This document shows, one piece after another, positions 1,413 through 64,000 of a stretch of DNA of 64,000 nucleotides (positions are counted from its first letter, which is position 1; each line of letters starts with the position of its first letter). The stretch comes from Octopus sinensis (lineage: Eukaryota). The DNA is taken from NCBI RefSeq assembly GCF_006345805.1, contig NC_043011.1, forward strand, positions 29,090,464 through 29,154,463, written 5' to 3'. A model generated the notes under the pieces. It worked only from the letters and a program-made list of their open reading frames with translations, was not told where the DNA came from and searched no databases. A program made the position numbers and the translations under genes.

Positions 1413-33069
<31,657 letters not shown>

Positions 33070-44013: not shown

Positions 44014-45079
44014 TACACCATAAATAGCGTTGTGTATAAGGTCTACCTACACAACACTATATTTTACGAACCAGCGAAGGTAGTTCGAGTGGTTGATCGA
44101 CTCGTTAAAACAATACAGTTCTCCCTCAAGTCACATCCCGTCGCCTTCAAAAGAAAAGTGGTGGGGAGGACATTGGATAGTGTCCTGGCCCACTGAATAT
44201 ACTTATACACCGAGCCTAAAAATTAAATGCGACGATCGCCGTCAAAACATTGTTGCTCTATTCTATTAGGGCTGCGTCCCCAAAGTCCATCACCTCCTCA
44301 CCGTGGTGGGGACGCTGGTAACGGGTAGTGTCTGAGCTATGCCGTCGGGAACTTCGGTTCCTGGTAGGGCCACCCAAGGCGGATTGGTCTGACACCGAGT
44401 GGTATTAGGGCCATAACCCGGCAGACGGGGGCTCTGGTGAAAATCCTCGGAGTGTCTGTTTCGGCAACTGGCGGCTCCTCGGTCGTTCTGTCCCTGCGTC
44501 CGCAGACAATCTGCGGCAAACAGGATGTCTCCACATGCGGGATTGTTGGGGACCGCTTGTGAAATCCACATATTCCCACGAAACTTCTTTCAACTTCTTC
44601 GAGATGCCTCGAGGGCGGTAGAAGAAGCCGGCTCAACCCGCCCAGGGTGAATGTCGCCACAAGTACAGGTACTATTAGGGCTGACCTGGAGTTAAATATC
44701 AACCGCGCTGTTTTTAAAGAAGTGGTAGGTTATGTCTAAACTGAAATAAAATGGTGACGAAAAACTAAGCTGTTGATTTATTAGAAAGAGTCCTTGAAAG
44801 ATTTCCTGAATGCAACATTTGTTGTTGGAATAAGGAAAATATCACGCAACTGTATTTCGATCTCCGTTCAACATCAAACGGTGGATTAAAATGAAAAGGA
44901 ATACGAAAATATGCATAGATTTAACTACAATGGTATAAAAATTGAACCACGTTCAATACTGATTGCAAAAAAAGATTCTGGTAGGATAGTTAGAGCTGGG
45001 CAAGGTTCGGTTCCAATTGGGCCCTAATTTTTTCATTCGCTTCCATGTTTGTTTATGTATACAATATGATTTGCTATTA

Positions 45080-45468
45080 TCTTTATATATAATAGAGAAG
45101 TTGTGTGTCTGTCTCCTACGATTTAGATTCCTAACTACTCCCACATTTTGCGGTGCAGTTTAACCAAAACCGGGTATCTTATAGTCGTGATTCATATCGA
45201 GCCCTTCTGGGTATTAGCGCACGTCTACGATGAGTCTACGATTAAAAAAAAATTTTTTTTCCATTTTAATGTATTTTTTTTCGCTATTATATTAGGGAAG
45301 TATCTCTCTAAAAATGTCTACGATGAGTCAACGATTTAAAAAAAAATTTACCATAATTTTTTTCCATTTTTTATGCATTTTTTGCTATTTTTTTGGTTAT
45401 AACTCTCTAAAAATGCTTATATAGTTATTTCCCTTACAAACCCGAGCAACGCCGGGCGATACTGCTAG
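45080..45468 (+). mobile_element. Non-autonomous Helitron
   Basis: A|TCTTTATATATAA...GATACTGCTAG|T. Confidence 0.82.
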
Positions 45469-46185
45469 TAATATATAATGAAATTATTGTATACAGTGCT
45501 CAGGTGCACCACAACATCATCAGTTCAAGCTGATGGAGATATAGCAGTGATATCTCACCCTGCGCATCTTTACCCAATATATGACTTAAGACGAGATGGT
45601 CACAACTACAAAATCTTGATCATCGTTGATCTGGAGTGCTAAAGATACCCAAGGTTTGAGCAATATAACCGAATGAAGAACGGGATTGTATATCATGTAT
45701 GTATGTGTGTGTTTGTACAGGGTATCCCCCCAAAATATATACACACTTTAAATAATTGTAAAATAGGTTATTAAAATTATTTCATTTTCAAAATTTAATA
45801 GAATCTACAGACATTATTCTATTGTTTTGTCAATGCCTTCTTTTCAAACTAATGTCCGTTCTGGTCCATTATTATGTACAATTGATGGATATTCGTCCTC
45901 ATGTTTGTTATTAACACAACGTTTCTGCTGGTGTACCCTCCAGCCTTCTTCAAGTGTCTTGAGGAAATTTCGAACCTGGGTTCTCATACCTAAGGTATAT
46001 TTCGATGTTGTTATTATTATAGTCCTTGCAATAATAATAATAATTATAAAAATAATAATAAAATATCCGTCAATTGCAAAAGTCTATTTTTCGTTTAGTT
46101 TACGGGTTGAATATGAACGCCCGAAACAACACAGCACACAATGGGCGAGAAATTTTTTATATTACGTCTATTTTTGATTGATATG

Positions 46186-46349
46186 ACGGGGTGAGCGCGA
46201 ACGCAGACCCCACACTTAGAAATAGCGCACCCGAGTCGCCCACATTTGGGGCGATCGCAAAGGCCAACCCAACCGGAGTGCAATGGAAGGGCCTCACTTT
46301 GGGAGAACCACCTTGATGATCATGGTTTACTCCTGTGCCAGGTAAGTAT
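46186..46349 (-). ncRNA. U1: U1 snRNA gene, copy 1 (variant)
   Basis: 164 nt; starts ATACTTACCTGG; loop II ATTGCACTCC; loop III CAAATGT; terminal GCG-TTCG-CGC stem; two substitutions relative to copies 2-4; 3'-box-like AAAAATAGA downstream. Confidence 0.96.
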
Positions 46350-46440
46350 GTTTTTTAGGCGTTCACTAATCTCATATAAACGATATTTGCATTGTAGCTT
46401 CACTGATATTGCCTCTAATATTACCTTAAAATATTAATTT
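46350..46440 (-). promoter_or_regulatory. U1 proximal promoter block (also 48663-48750, 53117-53205, 55039-55125)
   Basis: About 90 bp near-identical upstream of all four U1 genes; contains ATGCAAAT at about -43..-36 and TTTATAT at about -31..-25. Confidence 0.75.
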
Positions 46441-47050
46441 TTCAGCATATTCCATTATATATATTATAACTCAACTGCTACAACTCATTATTTCTAATTC
46501 AATGGTTTAGTAAGATAATGATTAATTTCTTGAAATATTATAAAGTTTAGAAATTATAACCTTGTTTAATCCAAAAGTAACGGCAAATGAACAAGGGAGA
46601 CAATTCCAGTTTTATTTGTAAGTTTACCGATAAAAATATTTACTGTAATACATTTACTACACAAAACGAACCAACAAAAGAGTATCTTACATGATCGTTA
46701 GGCATGCTAGATATAACAACGAAATCTTCCTCAAATTACACACAATGGTTTATATTTTTTACAAAGATGAAAACTAACCGGGGCCGGTTGTCAAGCGGTG
46801 GTGCGGGACAAATAGAGCATACACACACGCACGTATATGATATCTGTATATATACCAATGTACGACCGGTTGATTGATGCCCGGAATAAGTAATATCGTG
46901 TTTCGGTGAAATATAGACATACATTCAAGAAACAATTATGTAAAACATTATTATTGAAGTATAAAAATTTTACTACTAAATACAATATTTTATAAAACAA
47001 AACCACTGACGGAAGACTTTTACAATCAATGCTTGTAGCGTAATTGGGGA

Positions 47051-47051
<1 letters not shown>

Positions 47052-47119
<68 letters not shown>

Positions 47120-47135
47120 TATGTTACATTTTCTA

Positions 47136-47181
<46 letters not shown>
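47052..47181. repeat. Interrupted (TA)n microsatellite; many other (TA)n/(CA)n/(GAT)n tracts, e.g. 1667-1720, 2024-2077, 35126-35290, 61592-61684
   Basis: Direct reading. Confidence 0.95.
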
Positions 47182-47186
<5 letters not shown>

Positions 47187-47898
47187 ACGGCAGAAATTGA
47201 TTAGTAAACAATTTTATGATGTGTCGAAGTCAGCAGTTGTAACGATCAAAAGTTGTTATAATTGTTTACTGTAGGATGTGAAAGATGAATAATGCATGAA
47301 GTTTTAAGGAAAAGTTTATTTACCGTTACGTTACAATACCTTGCCTCGACGAGCAGGTTATGATAAATCCAAAAGCATGCGAAGTAAAGTTTGTGTTTGT
47401 GGCCTCTACATTGTTTAGTAGTAGTTACAGAGAGAGACAGAATGACGTTGTAAGAGAACAGAATTGGAGCTAGTGAGAGTGAGAGAGTGTGGGACGTTGT
47501 CTTTCTGTTTCCCTCTGGCCGTTTTGTCTGCCTGCTTCCATGATTCTAGTGGTCGGTTCACTAACCGATGTTAGCTCTCTCTCAACTCACGAGTTGTCAC
47601 CAAAGTGACTAACTGATTTTTGCTTGGGGTATGCTTGCTTATATAACTATCCAGAAGGCTAGATATATCATTGGGAACAATAGATTTAGTTGGTGGTCTT
47701 GTTATCTCTATTCTAGCTTTTGGTGAAGTAGAAGAGGTTAGAAAGGGTCAAGCGGTGAAGACATTATTTCGGCCTAGCTAAAGGCATCTGGAAAATATAA
47801 AACTGCTGTCAGAGAAAAACCATTGTTCCACCGTGGGAAAAGTTCTGCTGCAGTGATAATTTAAATTTGAGAATGGTGGATCGAATCCACTTCATACA
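47182..47898. mobile_element. Possible solo LTR
   Basis: Starts TGTAACGG immediately after (TA)n, candidate CA end near 47898; boundaries uncertain. Confidence 0.3.
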
Positions 47899-48498
47899 TG
47901 CAAGATTCACTACAGATATATATCACAGTCTCTACAATATATATCTATATTCAATAACGAACCATATAATTCATACTCTGGAAATTTTTTTCTGTAAAAT
48001 ATTAGGAGCTTCCACCTCACCTCACCCCGTTTTTCTCTCTCTCCAAAAAGGTTTCTGTAGCATATTAGGTCACAGAAATTCATTTAACGAAAAAAGAAAA
48101 TTCCCAATGATTCCGGGAATGGGGGTCCCCTTCGCCCCCCCCCTTCCTGACCGAACTAAAATAAGGGATCTGCAGCATATTAGGAGGTCAGGGTACTTGA
48201 TTCCACGCAAACATTCCGAGAAATTTCTTGGTGGAAAACGAGCGGGTATTAATCTAAAAGTTCACTCTTTGTTTTCGTTTCTAGCATTAACTCACATGGA
48301 GATTGGCAAAAGTTATGGCTGAAAATCGATTTTTACCAGTATCCGCGGGTGCTTTGGAGAAAATAAGTTGACAGAGAAACCCAGCCAAAATGTTTTTCAT
48401 AATTGAAAGACAAATGAAAAGAGAAACAACCTAGAAAATCTTGTCAAAAGGCGAAAATCCAACTTCTGTTGGTAGACTGTCTGTTCTTGAATTATATG

Positions 48499-48662
48499 AC
48501 GGGGTGAGCGCGAACGCAGACCCCACACTTAGAAATAGCGCACCCGAGTCGCCCACATTTGGGGCGATCGCAAAGGTCAACCCAACCGGAGTGCAATGGA
48601 AGGGCCTCACTTTGGGAGAACCACCTAGATGATCATGGTTTACTCCTGTGCCAGGTAAGTAT
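48499..48662 (-). ncRNA. U1: U1 snRNA gene, copy 2 (variant)
   Basis: ATACTTACCTGGCACAGGAGTAAACCATGATCATCTAGGTGGTTCTCCCAAAGTGAGGCCCTTCCATTGCACTCCGGTTGGGTTGACCTTTGCGATCGCCCCAAATGTGGGCGACTCGGGTGCGCTATTTCTAAGTGTGGGGTCTGCGTTCGCGCTCACCCCGT; 3'-box-like AAGAACAGA. Confidence 0.96.
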
Positions 48663-50872
48663 ATTTTTTTCGGCGTTCACAAATCTCATATAAACGATAT
48701 TTGCATTGTAACTTCACTGATATTGCCTCTAATATTACCTTGAAATATTAATTTCTCTCTAAATATCATCATATATATTATAGCTCAACTACTACAACTC
48801 ATTATTTCTAATTCAATGGTTTAGTAAGATAATGCTTTAATTTCTTGAAATATTATAAAGTTTAGAAATTATAGCCTCGTGTTATTCAACAGTAACGGCA
48901 AATGAACAAGGGAGACAATTCCAGTTTTATTTGTAAGTTTGCCGATAAAAATATTTACTGTAATACATTTACTACACAAAACGAACCAACAAAAGAGTAT
49001 CTTACATGATCGTTAGGCATGCTAGATATAACAACGAAATCTTCCTCAAATTACACACAATGATTTCTATTTTTTCTTACAAAGATGAAAACTAACCAGC
49101 GCCGGTTGTCAAGCAGTGGTGGGGCAAATGAAATAGAGTATACACACGCGGGCGCGCGCGTCAGTGTACGTACGACCGATTGTGTTTTTTTTAAAGTTTA
49201 AGTTTTAAGTAGTCATAATCTTTATTTATTTGTAAATTATTTATACTTTGTATATAATAATCGCAAAATTTTTTATATAACACGAACTCATTCATTCTAT
49301 GTAATTGTTTGTCCTGTGCTGCCCCTATTTCTGTGTTTGATCCACAGTGATCTCAATAAAGATTTGTTTGATGCCCGGAATAAGTAATATCGTGTTTCGT
49401 TGAAATATAGACATACATTCAAGAAAAAAATATGTAAAACAAGTAAAACATTATTATTGAAGTATAAAAATTTTACTACTAAATAAAATATCTTATAAAC
49501 AAAACCACTGACGGAAGACTTTTACAATCAATGCTTGTAGCATAGTTGGGGAGGAGGCAATGGGGTGATCAGCTTAGACGGCACTTTTACGGGGATAGTA
49601 CTTACGGATCTACTGTATAAGCCTGTAAAAGAGGATTGAGGGAAGAGGTAAGGGATGGCAATCTTAAGGGACACTCTGGGTAGCACGTAGTATAACAACG
49701 CCAATATATGTGTAAACAATATTTTTCGTGAATGGGAAGGTCAGCTTTTTATGAAGATACGTGTTCAAAATTTATTCTTTTTTACTCTCCCACCACCTCA
49801 CCATCACACTCCGGACCAATCTTGGCGAATTCTTTTGCAAGTAAAACTATGATAGGATCCTTTTCAGTAAAAAGAAAAGTATTGTAAATATTCTCAGAAG
49901 AAAAAGTGTGTGTTTTAATGGAGATTTGGTTGTTATTTCTAGCACATCCTATGATGGCCCTCCTTGTTTCTTTCTTTCTCACTGATACATCTATTGAAGT
50001 TTTTCAATATTTTTCTCTCCATAAACACATTTACGGAATTAATTTTTTTATATTTATGATTTTTTTTTTCTATCCCACTGCCCGGCCTCGATTGTTTCTC
50101 TTCATAATACAAAATATTTTAGATCCTGAGAAGGTCATTGCTGGCACTTATAAACAGTGATTTCAAAAAAGTAGTATGTAAAAGATAATTCATTTTAACA
50201 GTATACTTTTCTGTTAGGAAAAGTTTGGAAATACTTCCGCCCGTCCCCCCACCCCCATATTCTCTCAAATTTGTTAATTTTTGTAATTTTTTGTGCCCAA
50301 AATCCCCGTTTTCGGATATGGAGGTTCCGGAAAATTGCCAAAAATCGGCGTTGGGAAATTCCTCCCCTTCCCCACAACTTCTTCAATTTTGTCTTTTTTC
50401 CCCAACACTAACCCTAAAACCGTAACCCTAACCTTACCCTAACCCTAACCCTAAAGCCGTAACCGTAAATACAGAAATGTTTTGAAATGTTTGTCCGTAT
50501 TTTTCCGCTTATTTAGAAAAAAAAAATTCTTAAAAAAAATTTTACAAAGATTTTTGGAAATTTTTTCAGAATCATAATCTCCGTATTTTTCCGTATATAT
50601 TGAAAAAAAAATTGTGAAAAAAAGTTTAAAATGAAGGAAATGGGGGTGGGGTGGTAATTTAGAAATGTCGATTTTTGCCAATTTTTTTGTAGATTCGTAT
50701 TCCCCGTAGCCAAAGGTGGGGGTGGGGGCGAGGAGTTGTGTGGAAAATTTTTTTTTAAGGGTGGGTTTTTTTTGGGGGGGGGGGGCAGGATAGGCGGAAG
50801 TCTTGCCAAAAGTTTTCCTTTACACACACACACATTGAAGTAGGGGTAAACATTTTAATTACCATTTTTTTG

Positions 50873-52230
50873 TGAAAAAAAAAACAGAAGCGAAGAGAGA
50901 ATTACGGCTAATTCTTTATTATAGGCACAATGGCCTGATTATATAGAGAGGACAATACAAAATACACGCGGGAACACAAAACGAATGAAAAAATGAAAAT
51001 GAAATGAATATAAACAGGGTGTAGATGAGACAGCCGCCTCGCCCCCGCTGCGAGACGAACTGTGATTATCTTACTTTCTTAAACTTACAACAATAACTTT
51101 ACAAAAAACATTGGTTTTTACATCTGTAACAGCCCTTACACTACTTACTCCACCGCATTCTTCTACCACTTCTGGAGTCATTAGGGTTGTTGAGCAGCCC
51201 GTGTCTGCGAAGGCTCGTGATACCTTTCCGTTCATCACGACTTCTACTACTGGCAACGACTGTAAACAGGCCTCTATTCCTTCGACGGGACAACCAGCAG
51301 CGCAGTAGTCTCCCTTGGACCGTTTCCCTGCACACATTCACCAGCGATGTGGCCTATCTGTCTGCATCAATGGCAAATCACTCCAGGCCTGGGTTCCCTG
51401 CAGTCCCCCGCCATGTGGGAAAACTGACACCGAAAACACTGTCCTTTGAGGGGTCGCGCACGTTCCTTGTTCGACTTTTCAAAATTTCATCTTGCATACT
51501 TTTATTTTATAATGTTCTATGTCCCCAATGTCTTGTAGTGTCCCCTCTATGTCGCCCCTCGTGGGTAATAAAGAAAAAGTTCCTTGTTCGACTCCTCTCC
51601 GCCGCTCTTTGTTCGACCCCTTCTCGGTGTTGCAGTCGCTGCCAAAGGTGTCGTCCCGCAACACGAGACGATGATTCTGGCCCGAGAGAGCACCTCTCTC
51701 ATTGACATAGACTGAATGTTCGGCAGCTTTTGTAGCTCGACCGACACATGGCCAGGAAATCCAGTCACAAAGGCTAATTTTACGGATTGTTTTAACGTGC
51801 CATCTCTATATCCCACGAGTATAGCCAATCTCCTGATTTCGTTGGGAAACACATCGACCTGTTTGCCCCTCCACTTTGTTTTCCCCAGTCGACCATATGC
51901 CATAAATGGTCCTTCTGTGAAAACCTCCATTAGACGGCCTTCTATTTTTTCTGCGCTCAACTGGCCCTTCTCTTCCATTTCCAGGTGTAGCGCCAACGCC
52001 GATCCACCGAGGTACAACGGTATAAAACTCGCTAGATCATCTGTATCTTGGAGTCTTGCCACCAACTTAATATTTTGCAGTCAAGCAGTAATATCTCCCC
52101 CACACAAAATAGCCTAAACGTCTCATTCGAAACACGGACCAAACCAATCACTTTTTTTTTCTCCTTTGAACCGAAATATCTTGTATTGTAAAGGAAGAAA
52201 AAAGTCAGAAGCGAAGAGAGAATTACCGTA
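50873..52230 (-). mobile_element. Degenerate Gypsy-type LTR retrotransposon (gag + protease, RT/IN deleted)
   Basis: Gag-like LVARLQ..LASFIPLYLGGSALALHLEM..; aspartic protease VVMNGKVSRAFADTGCSTTLM; G-rich tract (51033-51050) before a TG-starting LTR-like segment (51032-50873) with TATATAA and AATAAA; the LTR 3' motif GTAATTCTCTCTTCGCTTCTG recurs near 52205-52228. Confidence 0.8.
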
Positions 52231-52757
52231 GTCTTACCTGTCGGTCCAGAGAAAGGGTCACTTTCAACATCCACGTCTTGTCACGAACTCCAATGTTCAC
52301 TCCACGTCCTTGCGCGCTATCCGTTACTCGACCGTCTCACACGTCCGCTCTGATGTGCTGTTCGCCGTCGACTGACTCTCGTGCTTCACCGAATGCCGCA
52401 TATCCACCACGGAACTTCCAGTGGTTTCCACAGACCTCACTTCTGACAGGACATGCCTACTCCCTCACCTCCGATCCTTCCCTACAACACAGCAAGGCTC
52501 ATAACACCACATTATTGTTGCTTATATCCCACCAATAGATCGCGCGTGTGTTACATTCGGCATTATAATTCCATAAAATGTGTTAATGAGAGAAAAATAT
52601 TGAAAAAAACATCAATAAATGTGAGAGTGTAAACGAGGATGGTGGTCTTGGGTCATTCAGAGTCTTCTTTCCAGATTAAGTTTGCAATTTCGGCTGGATA
52701 TACTCGAGATTGCTCCAATCTGGCCAGCCCCAAGGAAAAACGAAGCTGAGACGACTA
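51660..52757. repeat. Segmental duplication, partner 62782-64000+
   Basis: Gypsy remnant, LTR-like segment and downstream repeat share the same junctions in both places. Confidence 0.85.
52279..52511. mobile_element. Possible solo LTR (TGTCACG...CA); duplicate at 63400-63632
   Basis: TG...CA termini, GC-rich relative to flanks; no TSD seen. Confidence 0.4.
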
Positions 52758-52952
52758 GATTCATACAAATATATAAACCAAACAGGCTCCTTTCAAATTC
52801 TTGAAGAGCCAAAATCGGTCAGGATTGGAATGGTGAGGAGTGAAAGAATTACATTTCACAAGAAGAGATGCTTCTTTTCATTTCAACGACTGTATTGAAA
52901 TTTATAAAAAGTGAGGCGGAAAAATTCTGATAGTCTATTCTTCGATTATACG

Positions 52953-53116
52953 ACGGGGTGAGCGCGAACGCAGACCCCACACTTAGAAATAGCGCACCCG
53001 AGTCGCCCACATTTGGGGCGATCGCAAAGGTCAACCCAACCGGAGTGCAATGGAAGGGCCTCACTTTGGGAGAACCACCTAGATGATCATGGTTTACTCC
53101 TGTGCCAGGTAAGTAT
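52953..53116 (-). ncRNA. U1: U1 snRNA gene, copy 3 (variant)
   Basis: Identical by eye to copy 2; 3'-box-like AAGAATAGA. Confidence 0.96.
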
Positions 53117-53591
53117 ATTTTTTTAGGCGTTCACAAATCTCATATAAACGATATTTGCATTGTAACTTCACTGATATTGCCTCTAATATTACCTTGAAAT
53201 ATTAATTTTCTCTAAATATCATCATATATATTATAGCTCAACTACTACAACTCATTATTTCTAATTCAATGGTTTAGTAAGATAATGCTTTAATTTCTTG
53301 AAATATTATAAAACTTAGAAATTATAGCCTTGTTTAATCCAACAGTAACGGTAAATGAACAAGGGAGACAATTCCAGTTTTATTTGTAAGTTTATTGATA
53401 AAGATATTTACTGTAATACATTTACTACACAAAACAAACCAACAAAAGAGCATCTTACCTGATCGTTAGGCATGCTAGATATAACAACGAAATCTTCCTC
53501 AAATTACACCCAATGATTTCTATTTTTTACAAAGACGAAAACAAACCAACGCCGGTTGTCAAGCGGTAGTGGGTGAGAAATACAACATTCA

Positions 53592-53624
<33 letters not shown>

Positions 53625-53949
53625 GCCCGCGCGCGCGCACGCTTTGTGGATGTATTGTGTTTGTGTGTGTGTATATTTGTATAAGTACTACGTTTATGCA
53701 TTCTTTGTACATTTATGTGTGTGTGTATATGTGTAAATACTGTTTATGTATTATGTGTTTGCGTGTATGTATATTTATATGTAAGTAATGTATGTGTTTA
53801 TGTGTGTGTATTTGTGCATACACGCATGTACAATATATACAATCGACGATGTGTGAACAAGATGGTTTTTACCTCGATTTCTCTCCCTACTAAGATATTC
53901 AGACAAGTTTACAGACGAACACGAAAATCACAGATACACAGACAGACAG

Positions 53950-54490
53950 ATATGTTTCTTTATTAGCCACACAGGGCTGCACACAGACAGGACAGATTAC
54001 AAAGTAGAGCTTTGCTTTTTGGGGGGGGGGAACGAAAAAGAAGTGGGGTAGGTTTTCGATCAAAAGGGATCGTAAAAGGGAAAGAAGAAAAAAAAAACCA
54101 AAAAAGGAAAGAAAAAAAGAAAAAAAGAAAAAGGGGAAAAAAACGATCAATAGGGATCGTGTATTACAGTGTCATAATGTAATGTGTAAAGGGAAAGCAG
54201 ATAAGGTTTATCCGTGGGAAGAAAGCCTACGGAAAAGACCACGGTAACCTCGGTCAATATTGTTACATGTTACCACATTTGTTTTAAATTTCCGGGTTCA
54301 TAGGATTATGCTCAAGGTGGTTTCGTCATCCATACGTGCCATCCTTGCTACATTCACCCATCTTTTTTTAAAACATTTGCTAGACAGAACTTGCCTCTCT
54401 ACTCTCACTTTCCTTTTCAAGTGATACTTGAAGAAGTTGATGAGAGATTGACCAGAGAGGAAAGTGTTTGTCTTCAATCCTTTCAGACGC
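53950..54490 (-). mobile_element. L1/Tx1-like LINE 3' end
   Basis: ORF 54298-54507 (..FLSGQSLINFFKYHLKRKVRVERQVL..RWVNVARM..) followed by a 3' UTR ending GTGGCTAATAAAGAAA. Confidence 0.55.
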
Positions 54491-54598
54491 GGATTGGAGA
54501 CAAACACTTTCCTCTCTGGTCAATCTCTTATCAATTTCTTCAAGTATCACTTGAAAAGGAAAGTGAGAGTAGAGAGGCAAGTTTTGTCTAGTAAATGT
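54373..54598. repeat. Foldback hairpin, 108-bp arms, 10-nt loop
   Basis: The ORF track gives near-identical peptides on opposite strands (54380-54628 minus, 54391-54591 plus); 5 mismatches. Confidence 0.9.
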
Positions 54599-54874
54599 GA
54601 ACGTCGAAATTCTGTAGCACAAAGTCATGCTTAGTAGTGCAGATGGATAAAAAACAAACTTCGCTGCTGATGTGGCGCGTGGGTGGGATTAGCACTTATC
54701 AGTACGACAAACAAATGCGATAACGAACATGTGATTGTAGCGGGAGCATTTAAGTGAGAAGAAAAAAGTTTATACTAGACAACTCTTTGAACTACGGGTG
54801 AGAGCGACTGAAACAAAACATTTAACTGGAACATGAGAAAATTTCCTCATTTACGTCTATTTTTGATTGATATG

Positions 54875-55038
54875 ACGGGGTGAGCGCGAACGCAGACCCC
54901 ACACTTAGAAATAGCGCACCCGAGTCGCCCACATTTGGGGCGATCGCAAAGGTCAACCCAACCGGAGTGCAATGGAAGGGCCTCACTTTGGGAGAACCAC
55001 CTAGATGATCATGGTTTACTCCTGTGCCAGGTAAGTAT
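54875..55038 (-). ncRNA. U1: U1 snRNA gene, copy 4 (variant)
   Basis: Identical by eye to copy 2; 3' flank shared with copy 1 (AAAAATAGA). Confidence 0.96.
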
Positions 55039-55271
55039 GTTTTATAGGCGTTCACAAATCTCATATAAACGATATTTGCATTGTAACTTCACTGATATTG
55101 CCTCTAATATTACCTTAAAATATTAATTCTTTAACTAATTTCGTCACATACATTATAGACCACCTTAATATAACTCATTATTTCTAATTAAATGGTGTTT
55201 TAATTTAATGCTATAATCTGTTAATATATTTTTGAAATTATAATCTTATTTAAATTAACGGTACTGGCAAG

Positions 55272-55343
55272 TGAACAAGGGAGATAATTCCAGTTTTATT
55301 TGTAAGTTTACCGATAAAAATATTTACTGTAATACATTTACTA
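55272..55343 (-). promoter_or_regulatory. U1 distal conserved block (candidate DSE; counterparts near 46588, 48902, 53356)
   Basis: TGAACAAGGGAGA..TTCCAGTTTTATTTGTAAGTTT..GATAAA.ATATTTACTGTAATACATTTACTAC conserved at about -235..-305 in all four copies, while neighbouring sequence in copy 4 has diverged. Confidence 0.55.
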
Positions 55344-56516
55344 CTACAAAACGAGACAACGAAAAAGTCATTACAAGGTCGCTAGACAAGCTAGATATAA
55401 CAACCAAATCTTCCTTACAATATACACAATGATTTTTTTCATTTTAGAAAAATAAAGACATTTGGTAATATAATTTTAGACACAGATAAAAAGGTATTGT
55501 CAAGTATGGAATATGTTTCATCATAGTTCTGATTGACTTGATAGGTCAATAACTATCAGAAAATTGATGAAAGCATAGAGAAAAAGAGAAATGATAAGGG
55601 TAGAGATGGCAACAGAAGGGTGGGTTGGGGTGGGGGTAGAAAGCGGAGTTAGAAAGGGATTTTGATATGCCATGTTATAATTCATAATTTAAACCAATGG
55701 GTCTTAACACCGATTTAAACTGAATCAGTGAAGCTAATAGGCAGAGCAGCATGGTGCAGTGGACGTGTACTGAGCCCATAACTTATAGGTTACTAGCTTA
55801 AAAGCCACACTCCGGTTGGACATTTAAACTAACCACCGTAGAGGGCTAATTGGGCCTGCGGCTCAAAACTAAAGAGAGCTAAATAACATGATTATAATAC
55901 ATCTTAGCGGCATTTCGTCTGCCGGTGGATTTTGATTTCGAATTCTGCCAAGGTTGACTTTGCCTTTCATCCTTTCAGGGTCAATTAAATAAGTACCAGT
56001 TATGTACTGGAGTTGATGTAATCGACTTAAACCCTTTGTCTGTCCTTGTTTGTCCCCTCTATGTTTAGGCCCCTGTGGGCAATAAAGGAATAATAATACA
56101 TCTATAATGACTATATGCCATGGTGGTGTTTGATCAGAGGTTAAGGATGGACGAGAATTAATTTTGTAATGCAGTCATTCTATTGTTCCAGTCCCAAGTT
56201 GAATTCCAACTGTTGACTGATTCATCCCAAAGTTCTTATCTCAACATATAATTTACGAAGAAAATGTCATTTATATGCCCCTTGATCTCTGATGTCATCT
56301 GAATCAGCCAAGCTTTACCTGCTAGAAATAGCAACACAAATGCTTTTAAATCAGATTCCAATTCTGTATGTTCAAGAACCAAATGAAGGATAGATTTTCA
56401 ATCCCGGGATCATCCTGATTCCATAAAGGCATAATATGTCTATGAAGAGCAAATGAAGCTGAGTCACTTATGTTTACGTAATGTTTGTGCATGTATTATG
56501 TGTTTGTGTACATGTA

Positions 56517-61653: not shown

Positions 61654-62781
61654 ACACACAGAGACACACACACACACACACACAACTCAATTGAAGAATT
61701 AGACTTTACTTTTATATTTTCACTAATGAACTGGAATACTTGATTCGAATTTCATCAAAACTGGAGATTAAGAATTTTAATGAGGGTTCTTTCCTGGTTT
61801 ACACATCCTAACAAAAATTCTAATCATGACATATTTATCCCATATTACTCATCTTTATGTCCAGATTCCAAAATCCAAATCTTATAAAACCCATTCAAAG
61901 GTTTTTGCCCCTGAAAAATGGAGCACATGGAGCACATGAAGCTCTAAAATGTGTGAGTTAAGGCCTCTATTAAGGGGTCCTTAAAGTCAACTAGAGAAGT
62001 TGAATTGTTGAGAATCTTTTAAAACTTGTGTTTATATCTATTGCTCAAATTTCTTTGAAATCGGAAATATATGAATGTTCACTGGGTTTGTGAAAGAGCA
62101 AAGCTACGGGAAACCAAAAGACGAATGATCCCCATAAGCAGTCAGCTACCCTACCCTAGTCGTTACCACTCCCCAATGTAGGATTCCTCACCGTATAGGT
62201 GACCGGCGCAGCCATAAGATGCATTACAGATCTATAGTAATTGGAAGGGCGTGACCCAACTCAAACTAAACATTAACAACTGTGTGATGTGAGGGCTAAG
62301 GGGAAATGAAAGTGTCACCTGTGGGTTTTGCCAATGATCACTATGTCGATAGGTAACTGAACGGAATAAATTGCAGTCTATAAATCTCTATGAATGACCA
62401 ATCACTTATCTGGAAAGCCTTTGAAAACAATGTTACTATCTGAGGACTATCTCTGACTCAGTGATAAAAAAAAAAAAACTCAAAGGAGGCTTGCAACCAA
62501 ATAACTTTACTCAAAATAACACTTTGCAACTGAATCAGTGGAGGCAAAGATGCCTCCCCTTTACTTGACAATTTATGCACCACATTGCAGAAATCACAAT
62601 CTAAGTATATCTCAAAGCAAACTCTCTCACTGTTGTACTATTGAATTACAAATAACACTCATCTTGTATCCTCGGGTTACTCTACAGCTTCGAAGAGTGC
62701 AATTGTATTAATCTTATCTTAGGAAAAAACGACTAAATTTTTGGGGTTAAACCCTCACTAAGGGGTCTTACTGACTTCTAA

Positions 62782-63350
62782 ACATGAGACAATGGCCCTA
62801 GCCCGAGAGATAACCTCTCCCATTGACATAGAGTGAATGTTCGGCAGCTTTTGCAGCTCGACCGACACATGGCCAGGAAATCCAGTCACAAAGGCTAATT
62901 TTACGGATTGTTTTAACGTGCCATCTCTATATCTCACGAGTATAGGCAATCTCCTGATTTCGTTGGCAAACACATCGACCTGTTCGCCCCTCCACTTTGT
63001 TTTCCCCAGTCGACCATATGCCATAAATGGTCCTTCTGTGAAAACCTCCATCAGCCGGCCTTCTATTTTTTCTGCGCTCAACTGGCCCTTCTCTTCCATT
63101 TTCAGGTGTAGCGCCAACGCCTATCCATCGTGGTACAACGGTATAAAACTCGCTAGATCATCTGTATCTTGGAGTCTTGCCACCAACTTAATATTTTGCA
63201 GTCAAGCGGTAATATCTCCCCCACACAAAATGGCCTAAACGTCTCATTCGAAACACGGACCAAACCAATCACTTTTTTTTTCTCCTTTGAGCCGAAATAG
63301 CTTGTGTTGTAAAGGAAGAAAAAAGTCAGAAGCGAAAAGAGAATTACCGT
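62782..63350 (-). mobile_element. Second, truncated copy of the Gypsy gag remnant
   Basis: ORF 62758-63117 is nearly identical to ORF 51547-52065. Confidence 0.82.
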
Positions 63351-64000
63351 AGTCTTACCTGTCGGTCCGGAGAAAGGGTCACTTTCAACATCCTCGTCTT
63401 GTCACGATCTCCAATGTTCACTCCACGTCCTTGTGTGCTATCCGTTACTCTACCATCTCACACGTCCACTCTGATGTGCTGTTCGCCGTCGACTGACTCT
63501 CGTGCTTCACTGAATGCCGCATATCCACCACGGAACTTCCAGTGGTTTCCACAGACCTCACTTCCGACAGGGCATGCCTACTCCCTCACCTCCGATCCTT
63601 CCCTACAACACAGCAAGGCTCATAACACCACATTATTGTTGCTTATATCCCACCAATAGACCGCGCGTGTTTAATGAGAGAAAAATATTGAAAAAGACAT
63701 AAATAACTGTGAGAGTGTAAACGAGGATGGTGGTCTTGGGATATGCTAAAAACAACAGCCAAATCTCACTTAAATCGCAGACCTTTTCCTCTGAAAATAC
63801 TTATCTTGTATATTTATAATAAAAAAATGGGACAAGAACGCAAAACATCCAGTTAAGTGATACAAAAAAAGGGACAACAAAACATCCAGAGTCTTCTTTC
63901 CTCAGTCGAGTTCCAGATTATGTTTGCAATTTCGGCTGGATATACTCGAGATTGCTCCAATCTGGCCAGCCCCAAGGAAAAACGAAGCTAAGAGGACTAG

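Follow-up and report, generated by a model that had tools for sequence, protein, structure and literature searches.

The 64,000-nucleotide (nt) stretch of Octopus sinensis DNA analysed here (contig NC_043011.1, positions 29,090,464 to 29,154,463; hereafter the window) carries four genes for U1 small nuclear RNA (snRNA), which are very probably (a probability of roughly 85%) standard active U1 genes of the organism, lying in a 17-gene cluster on contig C15. When the whole window was scanned with Rfam cmscan, exactly four matches to the U1 model RF00003 were obtained, all on the minus strand and each spanning model positions 1-166. Their scores (133.4-135.0 bits) were about twice the gathering score of the model (69.5 bits), and a laxer Rfam scan of 40-64 kb yielded low-complexity noise only beyond these four. 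Genes 2, 3 and 4 were identical, and gene 1 differed from them at RNA positions 36 (U to A), which is the apex of loop I, and 86 (A to G), which is unpaired in stem-loop II. The original prediction, made from the letters of the window, had described four 164-nt U1 genes in the same orientation, three of them identical and one with two differences; cmscan and the comparison of copies confirmed this description. Any standard Rfam-based annotation would label the four genes U1. A literature search on octopus or mollusc U1 sequences or motifs found no paper describing cephalopod U1 genes, and the window genes are therefore filed as not previously described.

The RNA encoded by these genes has the architecture of U1. 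Helix H, the four-way junction with stem-loops I-III, and stem-loop IV were all present in the structure line of cmscan. The helices said to be rebuilt relative to vertebrate U1 (GCAC/GUGC, AAAG/CUUU, UCGCCC/GGGCGA and GGGGU/ACCCC) were all found in the window genes. The 5'-terminal AUACUUACCUG, predicted to pair with the 5' splice site, was exact in 4/4 genes, and stem-loop II (CCAUUGCACUCCGG), which holds the U1A-binding loop AUUGCAC, was the same as the model consensus; the 5' arm and the U1A loop are thus unchanged, as had been claimed. An RNAalifold analysis of the octopus U1 together with seven U1s of foreign origin (see below) recovered all U1 helices, with double compensatory changes in 17 of 41 pairs. 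In the minimum free energy fold of the single sequence, the 5' arm was paired with the Sm region; this pairing was treated as an in silico artefact, the covariance-model and alignment folds being canonical. Substitutions in the intact copies of the genome fall in loops or keep pairs. The compensatory changes in the helices are the expected behaviour of orthologous U1 RNAs, and the differences from vertebrate U1, with helices changed by compensatory substitution, would be ordinary lineage divergence.

We searched the 2.72-Gb assembly (13,516 contigs) for U1 genes in three independent whole-genome scans. The covariance-model scan gave 42 U1 matches and BLAST with the window U1 gave 41, while an exact-pattern scan for a U1-like 5' half (ATACTTACCTG, gap, GATCA) gave 39, seven of which were chance matches; all the U1-like ones read GGCACAGG(A/G)G...ACCATGATCA or a decayed form thereof. 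Thirty copies were full length (164 nt), 10 of them having the major form of the window and the remainder differing by 1-10 nt. Twelve low-scoring matches and one candidate on the unplaced scaffold C10352 were derived from the same RNA by truncation or mutation (ca. 13 fragments); the latter, considered as a second U1 class, proved to be an octopus-type pseudogene that lacks its 3' part and has a microsatellite tail. All copies, ca. 30 full-length genes and ca. 13 fragments, had common helices, the Sm element UAUUUCUAA and C at loop I position 35, and no vertebrate-like or otherwise distinct U1 class was found in the 2.72-Gb genome by the covariance-model, BLAST or exact-pattern scans. The proposal that the window holds a variant U1 class beside a canonical U1 fails within this genome because all U1 copies carry the same helices, Sm element and C35 and form one sequence family only. 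Nor did the idea of an undescribed system survive, the window sequence being, within this genome, the normal U1 of the lineage, an outcome that the original prediction had itself listed as refuting.

Each of the four genes does have the conserved block upstream and the 3'-box-like motif that had likewise been claimed. The 3' box in the window has the form A(A/G)AA(T/C)AGAC and lies at +12 to +20. This layout was also found at other snRNA genes of the genome. An ATCAGTG-type core is present at -56 to -61 in U1 (all three flank families described below), U2, U4 and U5, and AATTAAT is present at -90 +/- 3 in U1 family A, to which the cluster belongs, as well as in U2, U4 and U5. Downstream, an A(A/T)(C/T)AGA(C/T) element occurs at +12/+14 (U1), +15 (U5), +18 (U4) and +26 (U2). 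The ATCAGTG core and the 3' box appear to be a proximal sequence element (PSE) plus 3' box, the signature of snRNA genes transcribed by RNA polymerase II (Pol II). Since the layout is common to U1, U2, U4 and U5, the most plausible reading of the window genes is that they are active snRNA genes of the Pol II type. U2, U5 and U4 also form multi-copy clusters, at C3:19.70-19.73 Mb (U2), C25:19.09-19.41 Mb (U5) and C4:104.34-104.37 Mb, plus scaffold C9560 (U4). If it holds, the candidate snRNA promoter consensus (ATCAGTG at -58, AATTAAT at -90 and the 3' box) could aid the annotation of Pol II snRNA genes in cephalopods. An octamer, ATGCAAAT, was observed at -43/-44, directly downstream of the PSE core, in 19/19 family A U1 upstream sequences and not in the upstream sequences of families B/B' or of U2, U4 and U5. 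We take this octamer to be the Oct-1 site, which is found in the distal enhancer of vertebrate snRNA genes.

The cluster to which the window genes belong extends over ca. 200 kb of contig C15 (28.985-29.179 Mb) and contains 17 family A units. It consists of two arms of opposite orientation, the left mostly on the plus strand and the right mostly on the minus strand, and its next U1 unit starts 213 bp past the end of the window. BLAST of the window against itself delimited one conserved unit per gene (Table 1); identity between the units was 87-95%, and the spacers outside the ca. 650-bp unit were unrelated. A regular head-to-tail tandem array was ruled out, because the genes are unevenly spaced (2313, 4454 and 1922 bp) and only ca. 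650 bp per unit is conserved, with no relationship between the spacers. Across the 17 copies of the cluster, mean identity decreased from 98.9% in the RNA (positions 1 to 164) to 93.7% at -1 to -80, 78% at -81 to -480 and ca. 36% beyond -480. This gradient of identity away from the RNA therefore suggests selection or gene conversion centred on the working gene.

On the reading of the four genes as standard active U1 genes, each ca. 650-bp unit would be transcribed by Pol II from a PSE-type promoter (ATCAGTG at -58 and AATTAAT at -90), and the transcript would be 3'-processed at the 3' box, 12-20 nt beyond the mature end. The 164-nt RNA would adopt the canonical fold with a four-way junction and stem-loop IV, the 5' arm of the RNA would pair with 5' splice sites, stem-loop I would bind U1-70K, stem-loop II would bind U1A, and the single-stranded UAUUUCUAA element would bind the Sm ring. 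We infer that the U1 of the window is transcribed, is assembled into a small nuclear ribonucleoprotein (snRNP) and functions.

The Sm site and the U1-70K loop (loop I) were the two protein-binding sites said to deviate, and both indeed differ from the Rfam consensus at conserved positions. Human loop I reads G28 A29 U30 C31 A32 C33 G34 A35 A36 G37 G38 (GAUCACGAAGG) (PMC4383343). In the crystal structure of the human U1 snRNP, C31 and A32 stack on ribonucleoprotein-motif (RNP) phenylalanines, Leu175 and Asp177 read U30, G28 flips out onto Tyr112, and A29 pairs with A36, while C33 and G34 merely form a stack that lies between Arg191 and Lys138, two residues in contact with their phosphates (PMC4383343). 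Compared with human loop I, eight of the 11 nucleotides are conserved in octopus, and the only ones changed are octopus positions 34-36, which correspond to human C33, G34 and A35; G28, A29, U30, C31, A32, A36, G37 and G38, which are specifically read in human, are all kept. Genome paralogues vary at the same positions (U/G at 34 and U/A/G at 36), so that the apex reads UCU, UCA, UCG, GCA or GCU. In the RNP1 exon of the chromosomal U1-70K gene on contig C5, the exon that was recovered, the equivalent of Lys138 is kept.

The octopus Sm nonamer UAUUUCUAA (human, AAUUUGUGG) is placed correctly between helix H and stem-loop IV. Against the Sm consensus used (R-A-U3-6-G-R, single-stranded), its A-U-U-U-x-U core is intact and positions 8-9 are purines, A replacing G. 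The Sm site of octopus U5 begins with U (UAUUUUUGA), as that of U1 does at position 1, and position 8 is A in octopus U4 (AAUUUUUAC) and in half of the sampled U2 copies (GAUUUUUAG). Since the U at position 1 and the A at position 8 recur in U5, U4 and U2, the C at position 6 is the one feature that sets U1 apart. Human Sm position 6 is G130, which is too large for the SmD1 pocket and sits outside it, and U4 has U there (PMC4383343); the pyrimidine C at this position would therefore be unremarkable. We argue that the changes in loop I and in the Sm site lie where recognition is not base-specific, and predict that they are tolerated. As a separate observation, the U2 copies are divided between the Sm sites GAUUUUUGG and GAUUUUUAG.

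A search for U1s with C at the G34 position was made in genome contigs of bacteria and archaea. Eukaryotic contaminant contigs filed as bacterial metagenome-assembled genomes (MAGs) bear real U1 genes, the full-length copies scoring 140-158 bits. The loops of these foreign U1s read AUCA(A/C)C(A/G)AGG, the C having been required by the search pattern itself. Their Sm site was AAUUUCUGG, with C at position 6, in 5/7 U1s, and the pattern did not demand this Sm form. G was present at position 51 of these U1s, and position 36 was A or G but in none of them U. The loop and Sm positions that deviate in octopus thus appear to be variable in the U1s of other animals also. Some of the MAG contigs (L195, L198, L203 and L205) consist of tandem repeats with U1, some also with U2, 5S rRNA or histone genes. 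One linked H2B falls in a 90%-identity cluster with the H2B of Hydra vulgaris, and contig L203 is for this reason probably cnidarian; contigs L198, L201, L202 and L205, with similar U1s, are possibly cnidarian too. Linked histone genes attributed none of the foreign U1 contigs to a mollusc. The most octopus-like foreign U1, on contig L193, showed 81% identity. A metagenome scan for the U1 5' end plus ATTTCTAAG at the right distance was uninformative either way, as all of the at least 120 matches listed were chance matches of bacterial origin.

Several points weigh against taking the window genes for standard active U1 genes. The Sm element has A in place of G132, a conserved position of the Rfam consensus, and in loop I every copy is off the consensus at G34 and the major cluster form at A35 too; the predicted tolerance of these changes is argued from the human structure. 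The activity of the window genes is deduced from features of the DNA. Finally, the covariance scan scores the best first-look candidates, and a very divergent second U1 class could escape it; any U1 near the gathering score should nonetheless appear among its candidates.

The U1 genes of the genome differ in their flanks, and this bears on how the cluster might be used. By flank, the full-length genes sort into three families, A, B and B'; family A comprises the C15 cluster and two outliers, and the genes of B and B' are scattered over C14, C18, C3 and other parts of C15. Between A and B, the RNA is 97.9% identical, but the proximal promoters are only ca. 32% identical and the 3' flanks are different. 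Family A RNAs have A19/A51, U34 and mostly U36, while B/B' RNAs have G19/G51, A (mostly) or U at 36, and U or G at 34. These facts, together with the developmental switching of U1 isoforms documented in sea urchin, Xenopus, mouse and fly (PMC4291461), are consistent with a developmental or tissue-specific split, in which the C15 cluster would be a stage-specific high-copy set (e.g. for oogenesis or the early embryo) and the B/B' genes would be constitutive. The pseudogenes point the same way. The genuine U1 pseudogenes of the genome are 5'- or 3'-truncated, have no promoter and often have (ATT)n tails; nearly all of them carry G51 and A36, and three retain the family B 3' flank including the 3' box, suggesting that B transcripts were available for germ-line retroposition. 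The (ATT)n-tailed copies are probably retrocopies of read-through pre-U1 transcripts mediated by long interspersed nuclear elements (LINEs).

On the other side, the RNAs of cluster and dispersed genes differ by 2-4 nt, and the changes at 19 and 51 merely turn A-U pairs into G-U pairs. The linkage between RNA variant and flank is not absolute, because C18:7626201 combines a family A flank with G19/G51, and the bias among the pseudogenes may reflect age, the B-type being ancestral. We therefore consider such a split possible but rather unlikely; it refines the explanation of the window genes as standard active U1 genes without contradicting it. If cluster and dispersed genes were differentially expressed, this would be another developmental U1 isoform switch, here in a lophotrochozoan. 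As a side observation, two U1 pseudogenes at C2:143789712-143789998 overlap in inverted orientation, with the junction inside their 5' parts and (AT)n or (ATAC)n repeats on the flanks.

The same variants indicate a direction of change. The B-type looks ancestral because the foreign U1s (G51, A/G36) and nearly all pseudogenes (G51, A36) share its states, which also favours a derived cluster form in the isoform split considered above. The major form of the cluster appears to have been derived recently and to have spread through amplification or conversion, and window gene 1 (A36) seems to keep the older loop state. A stronger version, in which the C15 array is a derived isoform family with its own promoter and U36 that may have stage- or tissue-specific use and altered affinity for U1-70K, appears improbable. 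The human counterpart of U36 stacks on the closing A-A pair in the U1-70K complex. If this version were true, octopus would have two functionally distinguishable U1 snRNPs, besides the lineage-wide G34-to-C change of the loop.

It is very improbable that the window genes belong to a silent or decaying array of amplified pseudogenes or passengers of segmental duplication. The heterogeneous, repeat-rich spacers and the irregular gene spacing would fit such an array, and two outer copies of the cluster (C15:29177123 and 29178622) bear a pair-breaking change. Against this, the RNA region is far better conserved than the flanks, 10 copies are identical, and the PSE core, the -90 motif and the 3' box stand at fixed distances that are common to U2, U4 and U5. 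The true pseudogenes of the genome, moreover, look different, being truncated and promoterless with microsatellite tails. U1 retropseudogenes were ruled out for the window genes, as all four are full length with a promoter and a 3' box; no truncation or tail was seen in any of them, and the original prediction was right in not taking them for retrocopies.

Least probable, and scarcely tenable, is a variant class of U1 snRNP that is specific to cephalopods, has altered binding of Sm and U1-70K and coexists with canonical U1: the off-consensus Sm element and loop I apex and the variant U1 classes known in other animals (PMC4291461) speak for it, but the deviating features are shared by the full-length genes and fragments of a genome with no canonical or different U1, like deviations occur in non-cephalopod U1s, and just one chromosomal U1-70K gene was detected, a second match lying on a GC-rich, short-intron unplaced scaffold that is apparently foreign. 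Of the overall interpretation offered by the original prediction, the intact genes with promoter and 3' box stand, and the variant class and undescribed system do not.

Unplaced scaffolds only were found to carry a second snRNA set. It includes a U4 (134 nt) on C9068, C9530 and C12598, unlike the chromosomal U4, and a U5 (ca. 106 nt) on C9082, C9530, C8713, C9729, C9300, C11928 and others, unlike the chromosomal U5. The GC-rich, short-intron U1-70K, at C8695:53289-53495, shares only ca. 60% identity with exon 1 of its chromosomal counterpart. This U4/U5/U1-70K set seems to come from a different eukaryote (a parasite, a symbiont or prey), and no U1 of this apparent foreign eukaryote was detected in the assembly.

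With the window genes taken as standard active U1 genes, the outcome defines the U1 complement of the species, namely ca. 30 intact genes, which include one major cluster and fall into three promoter families, and adds little beyond annotation. In a small but useful way, the natural differences in the loop I apex and at position 6 of the Sm site help to show which nucleotides of U1 can change freely.

Table 1. U1 genes of the window with their flanking elements and conserved units, and truncated U1 copies elsewhere in the genome.
Feature	Position	Strand	Remarks
U1 snRNA gene 1 (164 nt)	46186-46349	-	RF00003 135.0 bits; minor form: A36 (loop I apex), G86
U1 snRNA gene 2 (164 nt)	48499-48662	-	RF00003 133.4 bits; major cluster form; 9 other C15 copies identical
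U1 snRNA gene 3 (164 nt)	52953-53116	-	RF00003 133.4 bits; major cluster form; identical to gene 2
U1 snRNA gene 4 (164 nt)	54875-55038	-	RF00003 133.4 bits; major cluster form; identical to gene 2
Gene 1 promoter	46371-46439	-	AATTAAT 46433-46439 (-90); PSE-like ATCAGTG 46401-46407 (-58); ATGCAAAT 46385-46392 (-43); TATA-like TTTATATGAG (-31)
Gene 2 promoter	48685-48753	-	AATTAAT 48747-48753 (-91); ATCAGTG 48715-48721 (-59); ATGCAAAT 48699-48706; TATA-like 48685-48694
Gene 3 promoter	53139-53207	-	AATTAAT 53201-53207; ATCAGTG 53169-53175; ATGCAAAT 53153-53160; TATA-like 53139-53148
Gene 4 promoter	55060-55128	-	AATTAAT 55122-55128; ATCAGTG 55090-55096; ATGCAAAT 55074-55081; TATA-like 55060-55069
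Gene 1 3'-box-like element AAAATAGAC	46166-46174	-	+12 to +20
Gene 2 3'-box-like element AGAACAGAC	48479-48487	-	
Gene 3 3'-box-like element AGAATAGAC	52933-52941	-	
Gene 4 3'-box-like element AAAATAGAC	54855-54863	-	
Conserved gene unit 1	46166-46832	-	3' box, RNA and ca. 480 nt upstream; window self-BLAST
Conserved gene unit 2	48479-49147	-	window self-BLAST
Conserved gene unit 3	52933-53600	-	window self-BLAST
Conserved gene unit 4	54855-55435	-	window self-BLAST
Truncated U1 copies with (ATT)n flanks or tails	C1:199613232, C25:2506100, C1:194021595, C5:120017932, C13:2782124, C10352:24830		

The remainder of the window was marked by repeats. Within the spacers, 51660-52553 matches 62781-63673 (894 bp, 95.5%) and 56521-57084 matches 32009-32568 (565 bp, 94%); an inverted repeat links 45078-45485 with 61038-60636 (419 bp, 87%), and a long (AT)n tract occupies 47025-47221. 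A 226-nt near-perfect palindrome at 54373-54598, between U1 genes 3 and 4, has a DNA fold of -117 kcal/mol (z-score -24) and draws spurious low-score microRNA matches; it is probably a foldback element or one resembling a miniature inverted-repeat transposable element (MITE). Open reading frames of at least 150 amino acids in the spacers of the window gave no Pfam match, and there were no tRNA genes in the window.

Among known systems, the closest counterpart of the window genes is the U1 of RF00003 itself (human RNU1 and Drosophila U1:21D), with which they share a full-length model match, the 5' arm, the four-way junction, the U1A loop AUUGCAC and stem-loop IV, together with an Sm element that lies between this last stem-loop and helix H. 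They differ from human U1, which has the apex CGA and the Sm site AAUUUGUGG, in having UCU, UCA or GCA at the apex and UAUUUCUAA as the Sm nonamer, as well as one extra nucleotide in stem I. The cluster resembles the concerted snRNA arrays (human RNU1/RNU2, the tandem early U1 repeat of sea urchin with its neighbouring late genes, and the embryonic U1 repeats of Xenopus) in that many near-identical copies lie at one locus, the coding region is homogenised above the flanks, and a second, dispersed set has another promoter and a slightly different RNA (PMC4291461). Unlike those arrays, the octopus cluster is irregular, with a ca. 650-bp unit alone conserved, uneven and unrelated spacers, and two opposed arms. 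Human vU1 and the U1:82Eb-type isoforms of Drosophila are likewise paralogues a few nt apart, with some differences in protein-binding loops; these isoforms, however, coexist with a dominant canonical form, whereas the features flagged in octopus are in all copies. U1 retropseudogenes, which are also present in this genome, are truncated and lack a promoter, often with (ATT)n tails, in contrast to the window genes, which are full length with a promoter and a 3' box.

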